Below are positions 6,512 through 34,239 of a DNA stretch of 41,088 nt, one piece after another. The stretch spans positions 136,131 through 177,218 of the forward strand of contig RQSC01000907.1 of assembly GCA_013416795.1 (NCBI GenBank), written 5' to 3'. The notes beneath the pieces are model-generated. The model was given only the letters and a program-made list of their open reading frames with translations. It did no database searches and was not told where the DNA came from. The first letter of the stretch is position 1. Each line of letters begins with the position of its first letter. The position numbers and the translations under genes were made by a program. The DNA is from Prasinococcaceae sp. CCMP 1430 (lineage: Eukaryota; Plantae; Prasinodermophyta).

Positions 6512-8251
6512 ATGCAGTACGGGCCCACGCCACCGCCTCCTCAATCAGCGCTGGAGGAGATCGACGGCGACAACGAAGGGGCACTGGCGGGCAACGCGAC
6601 GGGGGGAGCGGCACACAAGGAGCGCCTGACGCCCCTCGAGTTCCGCCGAGCGGCACACCGCACGCTCGCGTCGGCGGGCCGCAGCCGCAGGGCAGGCAAC
6701 GCCGCGTTCAAGGACGGCGAGCTAAAGCGCGCTGAGCAACTCTATGTCGAGGCCATGGAGTCGCTGCTTGGCCTGCTCGAAGTCCCTGTCTTCAAGCGGA
6801 GAGGCGCATGCGGCTTCGGGGACGTCGCAGCGAAAACGCATGGCCTGTGTCACACCACACTCAGCAACCTGGCTGCAGTCGCGCTCAAGCAAGAGCGCTG
6901 GGCAGATGCGGCCAGCCTCGCCGAAGAGGCCGGCATCAAGCACGCGGGCAAGTGCGAGGGCAGCGCCAGCCCGGGAGCAGTTGCGAAGTGCTGGTGGCGG
7001 GCGGCTACGGCGAGGCACGCCATGGCCGACTACAAGAGTGCTGCCTTGGCGGTGCAGGCGGGCCTGTGCGCCGCGCCTGGCGATGCCGCTCTGGATGCGC
7101 TACGGTGCAAAGTCGCCGCGGCGGAAAAGAGGGAGCGCGTGGCGACCAAAAAGCGATACGGGAGGCTCTTTGAGACCGCTGTCTATGCCGAGCACGCCGA
7201 GCGCACGCAACGCGAGGCCGCAGCTGCGGAGCGAGCCACTGCACGTGCAAGGCGACGAGAGATAGCGGACGAGACACTGCGCAATGCCGAGGTAGCCGTA
7301 GAGGCTCTGCGCGACAAAGAGCGAAGCGCGAAGAGAACGGGCGCCTTGACAGACGGCAAGCTCGATCGCCGCGACTTGAATGCTGGCCGCAGCGGCACCC
7401 CGGTGGCGGACAGTCGCGCGACTCGCGCTGACGGCAACGGTCACGCCAGCGACGGCGTGGGTGAGCACGTCGACCCAGCAAATGCGAGCGTGATGGCGCA
7501 GGTCGAACGCGCAATGGAGAAGATCGAAGGCTGGGTGGTCGATGAGACGTCAGCTTCGCCGGAGGACGTGGAGCGCTGGAGGAACGGCGTACTCGCTGAC
7601 GTGCTTGAGCCGGGTGTAGAGAAGCGGCGCGCCCAGAAAGAAGCCAGGGTGCTGGACGCCGTCATTCATGTCAACGCCAAGGTGAAGAACAATGAGGATC
7701 TTACCGAGGAGGACAGGCGCATCGTGCGCGACTTCCGCCGCAGCGAGATTGCTCGACTGGAGGCGAAGCTTGACAGCAAAGACGGACTCACGGAGGAGGA
7801 AAGTGGGCAGCTGCATGCAGGTGAGAGCAAAAGAATAGACCCGCGTCTCGCGAGGGTCATGAGCGCCGTCTGTGTGCATGGACAAGCAGGCTGACAGGGC
7901 GCCCATGGTGTGTGCTATGCGCCGCTCTGCACGTGGAACGCGTGCGTCCTAGCCCGTGGGGCCGAAAAGGAGGAGGCGAGGATGGAGTCAGAGGTGGCCG
8001 AGAGAACGCGCCGCATGGAGGACCTCAGCGCCCGCATTTTGGGCGGCGGATACGTGGGGCCGCGCGAGCGCTACTTTCTGTGGAAGGAAATAGAGGAAGA
8101 GGTCCGCCAGTTGCAATCCATAGACGACGATCGGGGCCTAACGCACTCCGAATACAGGGCGTACAAGCAAATGAAGGAGCTCCTGGACGAGCGCCAGGAG
8201 AAGCGCGACGAAAGAGCGCGGCAGCGCGCGCTGGCAAAGACCACCACGTAG
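6512..8251 (+). CDS. TPR-domain protein (FKBP/co-chaperone-type TPR) with long charged coiled-coil C-terminus
   Basis: join(6512..7820,7953..8251); phase-1 intron GTGAGA..CCTAG with GCTGAC branch. TPR motifs AGNAAFKDGELKRAEQLY, LSNLAAVALKQERW, KCWWRAATARHAMADY. Confidence 0.75.
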
Positions 8252-15080: not shown

Positions 15081-16955
15081 TCAGCGCGAGCTGTGGTCGA
15101 TGTACTTGATCGCGAGGTACGCACAGATGAAGAAAGCGCAAGGAAAAATGAACATGTAGCCGACCTGGTTCTCGAGCGTCTTGTGCTCCATTCCGTAAAA
15201 CTCCAGGATGGTCTCTCCTCCCACCGAGAAAACTGGGTCGGTATCCTGGAATTGGTTGAGCATGAAGCTCTGGAAGGGATACCTAAGGAAGTCAATGGCC
15301 GCTGCCCAGCGCCAGCCATCCGGAATATTGTCGTCTGTGATGAAGAGCCCGCCGAAGAACAGCTGGATGGTGACGTAGGTAGGGAGTGCAGCGTTCGCAA
15401 CCTCCAGGTTCGGGCACGCGCTCGCAAAGAAGTAGGCGAGGATGATCCCCGCGACGGAGCTGAGATAATATGTCAGCCAGTAGTATCCAAAGGTGCCCTG
15501 CATCCCAATAGCGAAGTACGTGGCGCAACAGTACACGGTAGTCGTGAGGAGCGCCATCAAGCCCTCCTCGAGCACTTTCCACACCAGATATGTCAAGCTA
15601 TTGTAACAGCCGTCGTTCCTCTCGCGGTAGAAGAGCGGGCGCTCGAGCACCAGCGTGGGCACGTACGCGGCGGCGCCGTAGCCGTTGAGCGCGGTCGCCA
15701 TGAAGAGCACCGACGTGGTGCTCTGCACCGACTGAGGGTCTACGTCGCTGCCGACTCCCCAGTAGAGCGACATAAGGATGAACGAGAAGAGCACCTTGTC
15801 GCCGAACCTCGGTCCGAGAAAGTCGGGGGTTGGCATCGCCTTCGCGGTGCGCCAGCGCAGCAGCGTGCCCAGTGCGTGCCATGACGAGTTGCGCGTGGCC
15901 GTGGTCATCTCGATGCGCGACCTCTGTGCTGTCGTAGACTGGGCTGCCTCCTCCCTGACGGCCGCCACCAGTGTCGCGCGCTCCTCGTCGGCGCGCTTGC
16001 GCTCGGCGCTCGAGGCGAAGCGCTCCGCCATCGCGCTTGCGTCGTCAGCGGCGAGCGCGAAGCCCTTGGCGTTGGAGGCGGTGCGGCCCGCCTCGATTGC
16101 CTCGCGCTCGCGTGCGTACTTGGTGACCGCCCCAATGCCCCCGTTCATGATGTCAATGACCCATTCGCACAGCGAGTACGATGTCATGTGCTCGGGGTAC
16201 TCGAATCCTTCGCCCTCGAAGAACTTCCTGAGCCCTGCGCCGCCGCCGCTGAGATCACCGAAGAAGGTAGTCGAACCCCCCTTCAGCAGTAGCAGGCGAT
16301 CGAACATTCCAAACGCCATGCCCGTGGGCGAGTGTATGGTAGCACAGATGGTGCATTGCGTGCTCTTGGCGAGCTCCTTGAGCACGACAACCACCTCGTT
16401 TGCCATCGTAGAGTCCAGCCCAGTCGTGGGCTCGTCAAGGAAGAGCACGTCCGGACGCGTGACCAATGCGAGGCCAACGTTGACGCGCTTGGCCTGCCCA
16501 CCGCTCACGCCGCGCTTGAGGTCGTTGCCGATGACGGTGTCGGCGCACTCGGTCAGGCGAAGCTGCTCCATCACCGTGTCGACGAGCGCCTTCATGTCGG
16601 CGGCGGGCATTTTCGAGTCGTTCTTGAGCGCCGCCGTGTAAGAGAGCATTTCGCGCACGGTGAGGATGTCGCACAGGGTGTCCTTTTGCTCCACATAGCC
16701 CACGCGCTGCCGCAGCGCCCCGGCCGTCGGCGCAGCGCCGCCGTACAACACCTCGCCACTGATCGTGCCCGCCGTCTTGCGGCCGGCGAGCACGTCGAGC
16801 AGTGTCGTCTTGCCGCAGCCGGAGGGGCCCATGAGCGCGGTGAGCTCATTGGGCCGCAGATAGCCGCTGACGCCGTGAAGGATCTCGATGGGCTCAGCTT
16901 TGCGCCCACGGCCGGGCACCGAGTAGTGCACGTCCTCGAAGGTCACAAGTACCAT
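15081..16955 (-). CDS. ABCG (White-family) half-size ABC transporter
   Basis: 624 aa, intronless. Walker A GPSGCGKTT, signature VSGGQAKRV, LFLDEPTTGLDS, H-loop TIHSP, C-terminal ABC2 membrane domain (LERPLFYRER). Confidence 0.95.
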   Translation of the reverse strand: MVLVTFEDVHYSVPGRGRKAEPIEILHGVSGYLRPNELTALMGPSGCGKTTLLDVLAGRKTAGTISGEVLYGGAAPTAGALRQRVGYVEQKDTLCDILTVREMLSYTAALKNDSKMPAADMKALVDTVMEQLRLTECADTVIGNDLKRGVSGGQAKRVNVGLALVTRPDVLFLDEPTTGLDSTMANEVVVVLKELAKSTQCTICATIHSPTGMAFGMFDRLLLLKGGSTTFFGDLSGGGAGLRKFFEGEGFEYPEHMTSYSLCEWVIDIMNGGIGAVTKYAREREAIEAGRTASNAKGFALAADDASAMAERFASSAERKRADEERATLVAAVREEAAQSTTAQRSRIEMTTATRNSSWHALGTLLRWRTAKAMPTPDFLGPRFGDKVLFSFILMSLYWGVGSDVDPQSVQSTTSVLFMATALNGYGAAAYVPTLVLERPLFYRERNDGCYNSLTYLVWKVLEEGLMALLTTTVYCCATYFAIGMQGTFGYYWLTYYLSSVAGIILAYFFASACPNLEVANAALPTYVTIQLFFGGLFITDDNIPDGWRWAAAIDFLRYPFQSFMLNQFQDTDPVFSVGGETILEFYGMEHKTLENQVGYMFIFPCAFFICAYLAIKYIDHSSR

Positions 16956-31367: not shown

Positions 31368-32588
31368 CTGCGCGTGCGCGCGGGTGCAGCCGTGTCAGTT
31401 ACGCGTCCCGGGAGCGGGCGTGGCGGAGGATCTGGCCGCGCGTGCACGCTGCTGGCGCCGCGTGCCGCGAGCGCATGCCGTCCGCGCGCATGCCGCTTGC
31501 GCGTGCGCGCGCACGCGCGCGTGGTGGGTGGCCCACGCCCCGGCCCGAGCGGAGGAGGGGCACGCGTGCGGTCTGGCGCGGCAGCCGCGGCAGCAGCAGC
31601 GGGGCAGCGGGGCAGCGGCGGCGGCAGCAGGGGGCGCCCCGCCCACCGCGCTCGGGGAACCGCGCCCCATCAGAAAGCACGTGATGCGCAAGGCGCCACG
31701 CGACCGAATGGAATCCATCCCCCTTTTTCAAAAACGTGTACTTTCGCACACATTGATTCCACTTTTAGGTCTGGATGACAGCGAATCCAACAGAATCCAT
31801 CTCGGAGAGCATTTGATGGAGCGCGCCCAGCGTCAGTCTTGCGGAAGGAATTTCGCGCGCGGCGCCGGGGCGGTTCGCCGCGACGCAGGTGCTCGCGCGC
31901 GAGCGCGTGGCGGCTCGGAAAGGCGGCACGGCGGTATTTCGCCAGCGCGTTCCGAAATGCCACCGAAGGCGCGCCGTTTGTACGCGCGCGTGCGCGCGCG
32001 CGCGCGCGCGCCGAGGCCGGCACAGCGCGTGCGTGGCGCGCGGCTCGCCGCGGCTGCGGCGAACGCACGGCTGGCGGGGGAAAAGGCGAGGTGAGGCTAC
32101 GGAGCGGATGGACGCGGCGCTCTGCGACGCGGTGCGGGGTGGAGGGGGAGGGGGAGGGGGCGCCACGGGGGCGCCCGCGCGCGCGGGTCGCCGCGCGCGC
32201 ATGCATAGATCTTCGCGCGCCAAGGGCGCCGCTTGCGCCTTGGCGCTGGCAATGGCAGGCAAGCCTGTGCGCCGAGGCAAACAAGGCGCTGGGAGAGACC
32301 AGCTTCTAGAAGAGGCGCATCGCGCCCTCGCTGGGCGGCGCTGCTATGCACGCCTACCGGGCGATGCGTGCCACGGCTCCTGCGCGCGTGCGGCGCAATG
32401 CGAGCGCACTTGGGCTGTTCCGCGGGCGACGCGAGCAAGCGCTGACTCGGTGCTGCGCTCTCCCCATTCCGTGCCCCCCAGCGCTGCGCCGCCTGCACAG
32501 TCTCTCGCCGTCGACGCAAGCGCGACACCAATGTGCGTGAGATGCTGCTCTTGCTACGCGCCGCTCGCACGCGCGCGCCGGGCGGGGC

Positions 32589-32672
32589 TCCTGTGATGAC
32601 AAACCACACAATATCATTCATGCGTGTCAGCTGAATCTGCGTGATGCACAAACCTAATCTTCTCACTGAGGA
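32589..32672 (+). ncRNA. Box C/D snoRNA with two guides (LSU rRNA and U6 snRNA)
   Basis: Box C GTGATGA 32593-99, D' CTGA 32631-34, C' GTGATGC 32641-47, D CTGA 32666-69, TCC/GGA terminal stem. CATTCATGCGTGTCA (32615-29) complements LSU UGACGCGCAUGAAUG with one G-U; CTAATCTTCTC (32654-64) complements U6 GAGAAGAUUAG. Confidence 0.88.
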
Positions 32673-32840
32673 CCGCACCCGGCGAGGGCCATTTGTGCCG
32701 CCGCCGCCGAGAGATCAGGCGTAGATGCCCGCGCCCCGACCCGTGCAGCCGTGCTGACCCGCCCGCCTCTGGTGCGCGCTGTCCGCGCATCTGTCACCGC
32801 GCGTGTGAACCCCGCGTCGCCGGCGACGCCCCTTCCACAG

Positions 32841-34239
32841 ATGGACGTCGACGCGTCGATATGGGGCGAGGACGAAGACACCATCGCGCTCCAGAATGAG
32901 CTTCAGGGCATGTCGGCGGAACAGATCCAACAGCGCACGCGCCTGATGGAGAACGAGATCCGCGTGCTCAAGGACGAGTCGACGCGGCTGAGCGAGGTGC
33001 AGAGCGGCATTCGCGAGCGTATCAAGGAGAACCAGGAGAAGGTGAAGCTCAACAAGCAGCTCCCGTACCTGGTCGGCAACGTCGTCGAAATCCTGGAGAT
33101 GAACCCCGACGACGATGAAGAGGAGGACGGCGCCAACGTCGACCTCGATGCGCAGCGCAAGGGGAAGTGCGTGGTGCTCAAGACGAGCACTCGGCAGACC
33201 ATCTTCCTGCCGGTTGTGGGGCTCGTGGACGCGAATGAGCTGAAGCCGGGGGACCTGGTCGGCGTCAACAAGGACAGCTACCTCATCCTCGACACCCTCC
33301 CCGCCGAGTACGACTCGCGTGTAAAGGCGATGGAGGTGGACGAGAAACCCACAGAGGACTACACGGACATCGGCGGGCTGGACAAGCAGATCCAGGAGCT
33401 CGTCGAGGCCATCGTTCTTCCCATGACGCACAAGGAGCGCTTCGACAAGCTCGGCATCAAGCCGCCCAAGGGTGTGCTGTGCTACGGCCCTCCGGGCACG
33501 GGCAAGACGCTCATCGCTCGCGCCTGTGCCGCACAGACAAACGCGTGCTTCTTGAAGCTCGCGGGCCCGCAGCTCGTGCAGATGTTCATTGGCGATGGCG
33601 CAAAGCTCGTGCGGGACGCGTTCACGCTGGCCAAGGAGAAGGAGCCCGCGATCATTTTCATCGATGAGATCGATGCCGTGGGCACCAAGCGCTTCGGTTC
33701 GGACACCAACGGCGACCGCGAGGTGCAGCGCACCATGCTTGAGCTGCTCAACCAGCTGGACGGATTCTCCAGCGACGTCAGCGTGAAGATCATCGCGGCT
33801 ACCAACCGAGCGGACATCCTGGACCCCGCGCTCATGCGGTCGGGCCGCCTCGACCGCAAGATCGAGTTCCCGCACCCCAACGAAAGCGCGCGCGCGCAGA
33901 TCCTGCGGATTCACTCGCGCAAGATGAACGTCAACGCCGACGTCAACTACGAGGAGCTGGGCCGGTCGACGGACGACTTCAACGCCGCGCAGCTGAAGGC
34001 CGTGTGCGTGGAGGCGGGCATGCTCGCGCTGCGCCGCGACGGCACGGAGGTCAACCACGAGGACTTCGTCGAGGGCATTGTGCAGGTGCAGGCGAAGAAG
34101 AAGGGTGCGTCGCGTGCGCAGCAGCTGCGCGCGCGCCGATGCTGCGCGTGATGCCTGTGGTCGCCGACGTCCGCTGACAAACGCGCTGGGCCGCGCCGCC
34201 CACCGCTGCTGCGCAGCCACGCACTCCTACTACGCCTAG
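32841..34239 (+). CDS. RPT5: 26S proteasome regulatory AAA-ATPase subunit RPT5 (PSMC3)
   Basis: join(32841..34104,34217..34239) gives the typical end [76 protein letters not shown] directly follows a CCACAG acceptor. Confidence 0.96.

Follow-up and report, generated by a model that had tools for sequence, protein, structure and literature searches.

Introduction

Can a single small RNA, encoded in front of a proteasome gene, guide the modification of both the spliceosome and the ribosome? The question is raised by a locus in Prasinococcaceae sp. CCMP 1430, within a 41,088-nt stretch of contig RQSC01000907.1 that we call the window. There, a first-pass annotation had proposed a dual-guide small nucleolar RNA (snoRNA) of the box C/D class upstream of the gene for RPT5 (26S proteasome regulatory subunit 6A/T5), with one guide directed at U6 small nuclear RNA (U6) and the other at large-subunit ribosomal RNA (LSU). 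We conclude that the element at 32586-32674 (+) is quite probably a functional methylation-guide snoRNA belonging to a conserved green-algal family outside Rfam, most likely one that resides in an intron of RPT5. The dual-guide proposal is borne out by box anatomy, by the invariance of both guides among 16 sequences and by covariation in the terminal stem.

Box anatomy

The predicted mature RNA is ~89 nt long (32586-32674, +), as judged from the sequence and from its match to the covariance model R1 described below, and all four boxes and the terminal stem claimed by the first-pass annotation can be read in it. The 5' half of the stem, GGCUCC (32586-32591, +), pairs with the 3' half, GGACC (32670-32674, +), as UCC/GGA and then GG/CC over one bulged C, C32588; family covariation supports the same pairing. 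After one spacer base comes the C box, GUGAUGA (32593-32599, +), whose GAUGA is invariant in our alignment of homologues (A2, below). The 31-nt segment between the C and D' boxes ends in the D' guide (32614-32629, +), which is complementary to LSU helix 71. The D' box, CUGA (32631-32634, +), is NUGA among homologues and is followed after six bases by the C' box, GUGAUGC (32641-32647, +), in the same place as a UGAU-type C' box in the homologues. The D guide, CUAAUCUUCUC (32654-32664, +), is complementary to U6 and lies in the 18-nt segment before the D box, CUGA (32666-32669, +), which is invariant in A2. The C and D boxes are therefore near the ends of the RNA and joined by its terminal stem, a D'/C' pair is present, and both guides are at least 10 nt long with the fifth base in the correct register, as the C/D class prescribes.

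The snoRNA forms an AT-rich island, with a GC content of 47% as compared to ~66% for the window. The motif RTGATGA occurs 7 times in the window on both strands, and a credible box layout with guides is found at the snoRNA only. Apart from it, a single RTGATGA...CTGA pair in the window is bracketed by a stem of 3 bp or more; this pair, at 15337-15463 (+), spans 127 nt, carries no recognisable guides, lies in coding-like sequence and is probably due to chance.

The D guide and U6

The D guide is the exact complement of U6 GAGAAGAUUAG over 11 bp, and the fifth base upstream of the D box, U32661, lies opposite the last A of the catalytic ACAGAGA box, equivalent to human A47. The first-pass annotation had read this guide in the same way, as an 11-nt perfect match at the SNORD7/mgU6-47 site, and published assignments support that reading: human U6 Am47 is assigned to SNORD7/mgU6-47, and the guide CUAAUCUUCUC is also found in the Rfam consensus sequences of snoU6-47 and snoZ30a and in Ot-CDsno55 of Ostreococcus tauri. 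The duplex is judged here from the U6 of other organisms (O. tauri, flax and human), and the 11-mer GAGAAGAUUAG is part of the published O. tauri U6 as well as of primers for flax U6. The guide has one exact match in the 41-kb window. Taken alone the 11-mer is not significant, since 13 of 100 shuffles of the window contain a match with at most one mismatch; the arrangement as a whole is significant, as the RTGATGA count above and the model match below show.

The D' guide and LSU helix 71

The D' guide forms 14 contiguous pairs with LSU UGACGCGCAUGAAUGG, one of them G.U (32616-32629), and the duplex can be lengthened to 16 pairs if another G.U is allowed (32614-32629), leaving G32630 unpaired. 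The first-pass annotation had counted 15 nt with one G-U; that length needs correction, while the target it named holds. Within the relevant LSU segment, UGACGCGCAUGAAU, it is the C of UGAC that faces G32626, the fifth base upstream of D'. The complementarity supports selection of this C, whose counterparts are C2304 in yeast and, as the SNORD10 site, C3787 in human 28S. The same guide is present in the Rfam consensus of SNORD10 (CAUGCGUGUCAUCUGA) and in O. tauri Ot-CDsno85.

For the numbering, we take yeast G2288 to be the G of CCUCG in the 25S sequence, which makes the C of UGAC C2304. The spacing of the reported methylations at A2281 and G2288 (human A3764 and G3771) was used solely as a check on the consistency of this numbering. 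In human, helix 71 is closed at bridge B3 by the pair G3771-C3787, and SNORD10 is the guide for C3787; the same 16-nt spacing separates G2131 from C2147 in O. tauri. In the newer human numbering G3771 becomes G3792, so the target C3787 becomes C3808. Arabidopsis Cm2294 was considered as the equivalent position and rejected, because after renumbering it lies 5 nt past G2289; the true equivalent is C2305 of Arabidopsis 25S (current numbering), which is unmethylated. Yeast is not known to be methylated at the helix 71 cytidine either.

This LSU stretch appears to be paired by more than one snoRNA family in differing registers. The Rfam consensus of snR75, compared with 32589-32636, has a 3' guide, CCAUUCAUGC, complementary to LSU just 3' of the helix 71 cytidine, and this guide overlaps the 5' half of the D' guide.

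A conserved algal family

We scanned metagenome contigs with a pattern consisting of TCATGCGTGTC, 10-40 bases and CTAATCTTCTCNCTGA, and recovered 20 loci, all with the order C box, LSU guide, D', C', U6 guide, D box. Because the genes adjoining these copies pointed to ICln, the ICln loci of named genomes were examined, and copies were found in four trebouxiophytes: Coccomyxa subellipsoidea C-169 (L036:9922-10021, AGSI01000005.1), [Myrmecia] bisecta (L039:10113-10227), Symbiochloris irregularis (L044:7899-8003, scoring 78.3 bits with R1) and Coccomyxa viridis (L045:7645-7740, 76.1 bits). One further ICln-locus copy is on a sequencing-run (Logan) contig, L037. The search for green-algal homologues that the first-pass annotation had called for has thus yielded 20 metagenome loci, one Logan contig and four genomes. 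The ICln loci of Chlamydomonas reinhardtii, C. eustigma and Sphagnum contain no copy, a result that speaks for those loci and not for the rest of the genomes.

Alignment A2 comprises 16 distinct sequences, the window copy and 15 others. The columns without variation are those of the box cores, AUUCAUGCGUGUCA and CUAAUCUUCUC, whereas the spacers, the D'-C' loop, the stems and the flanks vary freely. The invariance of both guides amid this divergence argues that both are under selection. The stem changes in a compensated manner: its covariation score is 0.488 against 0.20 for shuffled alignments, none of 500 shuffles reaches 0.488, controls in which the stem was slid score no higher than 0.20, and 72.9% of stem cells are paired as compared to 54.5% in shuffles. 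Stem pair 7:115 is formed in every sequence, as U-A (9), G-C (6) or A-U (1); at 6:116 there are 8 G-C and 5 A-U pairs. The covariance model R1 was built from alignment A3, which contains 15 homologues of other organisms and leaves the window out. It nevertheless matches the window copy over its full length (model positions 1-103 of 103) with 45.2 bits and E ~3e-8, and finds no other match in the window better than E = 2.

The surroundings of the snoRNA differ between lineages. In several copies a U24/SNORD24 snoRNA above the Rfam threshold follows ~60-150 nt past the dual-guide snoRNA (L036:9922-10247, L039:10113-10435, L022:845-1163, L037:760-1018, L016:3058-3369 and L018:443-820 on the minus strand), and in L036, L039, L037 and L016 this pair stands directly after the gene for ICln (pICln), a chaperone of small nuclear ribonucleoprotein assembly. 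L044 has a likely U24 at 8077-8163. In a second lineage the copies are intronic to a mitochondrial-type HSP60 gene, as in L035:6529-6593 (-), where exons are recognisable on both sides; further HSP60-linked copies are on L017, L024, L020, L025, L023, L027 and L031. ICln-linked and HSP60-linked copies both occur within the JAABU* metagenome sets, so some algae may carry two paralogues.

An RPT5 tree places the window species, a GC-rich green alga of marine habitat, and its relatives from TARA Oceans assemblies outside the core Chlorophyta, weakly beside Pycnococcus; this is a single gene and confidence is low. If the placement holds, the family is common to a prasinophyte-grade lineage and the Trebouxiophyceae, and is old within Chlorophyta.

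The RPT5 locus and the putative host intron

The main coding exon of RPT5 (32841-34104, +) encodes a protein with 81-91% identity to RPT5 proteins. It is followed by a 112-nt 3' intron (34105-34216, +; G/GTGCGT...GCGCAG/CC), removal of which restores the conserved C-terminus, and by a last exon of 7 codons and a stop (34217-34239, +; ...ATHSYYA*), identified by comparison of C-termini. The spliced product ends in ...KKKATHSYYA, comparable to ...KKKTSLNYYC in the relative's protein P0004. The in-frame stop at window 34149-34150, within this 3' intron, is absent from L014 and L015, environmental haplotypes of the window species, and a spurious 478-aa protein (P0002) arises because a prokaryote-style gene caller read through the stop-less intron.

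Upstream of the RPT5 ATG, splice motifs delimit a putative intron in the 5' leader (32533-32840, or from 32537, +) that contains the snoRNA. Both motifs named in the first-pass annotation can be seen (GTGAGA at 32537, and CCACAG with its last base at 32840), and 4 nt upstream of GTGAGA there is a second candidate 5' site, GTGCGT at 32533, a hexamer with which the proven 3' intron of RPT5 also begins. The candidate 3' site consists of a pyrimidine tract and a CAG that ends at 32840, directly before the ATG. Use of the 32533 site would eliminate an upstream ATG at 32531-32533; splicing from 32537 would leave an in-frame ATG-TGC ahead of the main ATG. The GT and AG of the putative intron are kept in L014 and L015. 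Because the GT and the pyrimidine tract-CAG frame the snoRNA before the ATG, its hosting in a 5'-leader intron is plausible, and the homologue in the HSP60 intron makes hosting by an RPT5 intron plausible by analogy.

Weighing the evidence

Several observations weigh against our reading of the locus. No other member of the family has so weak a terminal stem as the window copy (3+2 bp, interrupted by a bulge), whose U6 duplex measures 11 bp instead of 12. Conservation among haplotypes is a weak argument at this length. L014 and L015, from TARA Oceans assemblies, are 98.8-98.9% identical to the window, and the snoRNA shows no differences among the three haplotypes, which differ by ~1.1% overall; ~2 variants would be expected in 89 nt. 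By comparison, 4 distinct differences fall in the rest of the putative 5' intron and 7 in the 112-nt 3' intron. The 5' intron is unproven, being proposed from splice motifs. Finally, in the closest relatives (TARA contigs L001-L013, with RPT5 89-91% identical) RPT5 is intronless and no snoRNA is found there; nor is there one at the RPT5 locus of Pycnococcus provasolii.

Could the element be a set of chance motifs, or the dead copy of a retroposed snoRNA? The 11-mer is unremarkable in 41 kb, the terminal stem is short, and the minimum-free-energy fold of the single sequence has z = -0.25. The fold value is uninformative, an unremarkable minimum-free-energy fold being usual for C/D snoRNAs. Against chance or decay stand the full-length match to R1, with boxes and both guides intact, the location in an AT-rich island and the identity of the three haplotypes, and we consider this explanation very improbable.

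It might also be supposed that one of the guides is inactive in this species, for example because its U6 has diverged, leaving an LSU-only guide with a relic U6 element. The base next to the D box is A in the window copy only and U in the other aligned copies, which is what cuts the U6 duplex to 11 bp. We find loss of a guide improbable, since the 11-nt U6 guide is identical in all homologues despite their diverged surroundings, and since the U6 segment ACAGAGAAGAUUAG, with O. tauri and flax as examples, is highly conserved. This segment is among the most conserved of RNA sequences.

A more substantial alternative is that the snoRNA is real but not intronic. RPT5 and the divergently oriented adaptor-mu gene are separated by 1.5 kb, and in this gap the RNA might be transcribed independently or be cleaved out of an upstream or 5'-UTR transcript that is not spliced. 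The evidence for the intron consists of splice motifs, and the intronless RPT5 of the closest relatives fits this view. In trebouxiophytes the snoRNA and U24 form a cluster of two behind the ICln coding region, possibly a polycistronic unit like those of plants, and the snoRNA genes of O. tauri are intronic, clustered and intergenic. On the other side, the frame of GT and polypyrimidine-CAG around the snoRNA ends exactly at the RPT5 ATG, RPT5 demonstrably splices a GTGCGT...CAG intron, the HSP60 homologue is clearly intronic, and the Symbiochloris copy lies within the annotated span of the ICln gene. On balance we regard a non-intronic origin as a serious but lesser possibility, and continue to favour the RPT5 intron. 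The host gene is in any case not conserved: it is RPT5 here, the 3' end of ICln with U24 in trebouxiophytes and HSP60 in another contig lineage. Because the closest relatives have a one-exon RPT5 and no snoRNA, RPT5 hosting and both RPT5 introns appear to be lineage-specific.

The D' guide may have a second target. As in SNORD10, part of it, AUGCGUGUCA, is Watson-Crick complementary to U6 UGACACGCA, with the fifth base on the equivalent of human U6 C77, and the RNA would then be mainly a U6 guide, for A47 and C77, that also acts on LSU. SNORD10 itself is assigned both U6 Cm77 and LSU-C3787, and the printed part of its consensus shows this one guide by a box (72 internal positions are not printed). 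The guide sequence is contained in ...TTTGCGTGTCATCCTT, the standard reverse primer for human U6. One U of the guide forms a wobble with the LSU G and would pair A-U with U6; it is invariant in 16 algal copies, O. tauri and the SNORD10 consensus, and a second target in U6 would explain why it is never C. Yet in the window copy the U6 duplex would reach only 9 bp, with position 1 mismatched as judged from human U6. The O. tauri U6 has GACACUC, which breaks the duplex after 5 bp, and O. tauri keeps the U all the same. Arabidopsis is without methylation at the equivalent U6 C. Moreover, the invariant 5' AUUC is needed for the LSU duplex only, which argues that LSU is a true target of the D' guide. 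A second target in U6, beside LSU, is a serious but lesser possibility.

Going further, it could be proposed that one ~89-nt RNA programmes three methylations, at U6 A47 through the D guide and at U6 C77 and LSU C3787 through the D' guide, and that the tasks of SNORD7 and SNORD10 were united in this way in the ancestor of the green lineage, or earlier still. If this were true, Ostreococcus and animals would hold split descendants, and the moves between hosts (RPT5 5' intron, HSP60 intron, ICln-U24 cluster) would trace the movement and recombination of guides. This is an unlikely scenario on present evidence. The 3' half of Ot-CDsno85 (..GAAUCUAAAUCCGA), a single-target LSU guide snoRNA, resembles a decayed U6 guide, CUAAUCUUCUCUCUGA (PMC7671301), a hint that this Ostreococcus RNA had a dual-guide ancestor.

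Proposed function

We infer that the snoRNA is expressed and assembled in the manner of its class. It would most likely be transcribed within the ~304-nt intron of the RPT5 5' leader and freed by splicing and exonucleolytic trimming. Snu13, Nop56, Nop58 and fibrillarin would assemble on its C/D and C'/D' motifs, and the base to be 2'-O-methylated in each target would be the one paired to the fifth guide position upstream of D or D'. The D' guide, through 14-16 bp with LSU helix 71, would direct methylation of the cytidine equivalent to C3787, and the D guide, through 11 bp with U6, that of the last A of ACAGAGA (human A47).

The helix 71 cytidine is methylated in human and not in yeast or Arabidopsis; the family predicts its modification both in this marine alga and in trebouxiophytes. 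Coccomyxa subellipsoidea C-169 is grown in culture. With a sequenced genome as well, it makes both predicted methylations directly testable.

Comparison with known snoRNAs

Searched at Rfam gathering thresholds, the whole window matches no family, and ten homologous loci match only the adjoining U24; no Rfam family with both guides reaches threshold. At permissive E-values SNORD10, snoU6-47, snoZ30a, snR75, Z199 and others give sub-threshold matches confined to guides, and these do not amount to membership. In a survey of plant snoRNA families, the first 200 of 621 supplement files contain neither guide.

Among the closest known systems, two share one guide each with the element. SNORD10/mgU6-77 (vertebrates, RF01290) has a near-identical D' guide, CAUGCGUGUCA followed by NUGA, selects the same LSU cytidine and likewise serves both U6 and rRNA. 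Its U6 site, however, is C77 and not A47, and it is ~139 nt long with a long internal insert; in the window snoRNA a separate D guide carries the A47 function. Against RF01290 the window scores 13.9 bits (gathering score 37), with only the D' guide and box aligned. SNORD7/mgU6-47/Z30 shares CUAAUCUUCUC, N and CUGA in the same register on the last A of ACAGAGA, whereas snoU6-47 (RF01221) and snoZ30a (RF01196) lack a guide for LSU helix 71. Their models give the window 13.7 bits (gathering 54) and 13.6 bits (gathering 80), over the U6 guide and D box only. In human, then, the two guides are split between SNORD10 and SNORD7. The same division is found in a green alga: in O. tauri, Ot-CDsno85 is assigned 25S.C2147 and Ot-CDsno55 is assigned U6.A45. 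These have the same two guides and the same two targets, but on separate snoRNAs at separate loci (one in an intergenic cluster of chromosome 10, the other on chromosome 6), and the U6 guide of Ot-CDsno55 is at D', whereas that of the window is at D.

The first-pass annotation had suggested that joining the A47 and C3787 guides on one RNA might be a new pairing. We did not find this pairing in the literature searched; the Chlamydomonas catalogue of Chen et al. 2008 lay outside that search and may describe it. The pairing is, in any event, not peculiar to this genome, since other algae share it. What the family adds is a conserved green-algal snoRNA outside Rfam, with better annotation of algal snoRNAs as the practical gain.

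Since individual C/D snoRNAs that serve U6 as well as rRNA have been described before, the family is new but the principle is not. SNORD10 acts on human LSU-C3787 and U6 Cm77; Arabidopsis U27 (U27-2) on U6 A42/A43 and 18S A28; Neurospora CD11 on U6 A47, 18S A793 and 26S A356; and O. tauri Ot-CDsno96 on U6 A51 (the equivalent of human A53) and 18S A770. U27 and CD11 have the A47-equivalent guide, as does the window snoRNA, but the rRNA partners of U27, CD11 and Ot-CDsno96 are other ones, and none of the three joins the A47 guide to the helix 71 cytidine. Taken together, these cases suggest a modular reshuffling of guides, in which the guide for the ACAGAGA A stands alone in Ostreococcus and human and is joined to one for 18S A28 in plants, to those for 18S A793 and 26S A356 in fungi, and to that for the LSU helix 71 C in the algae described here.

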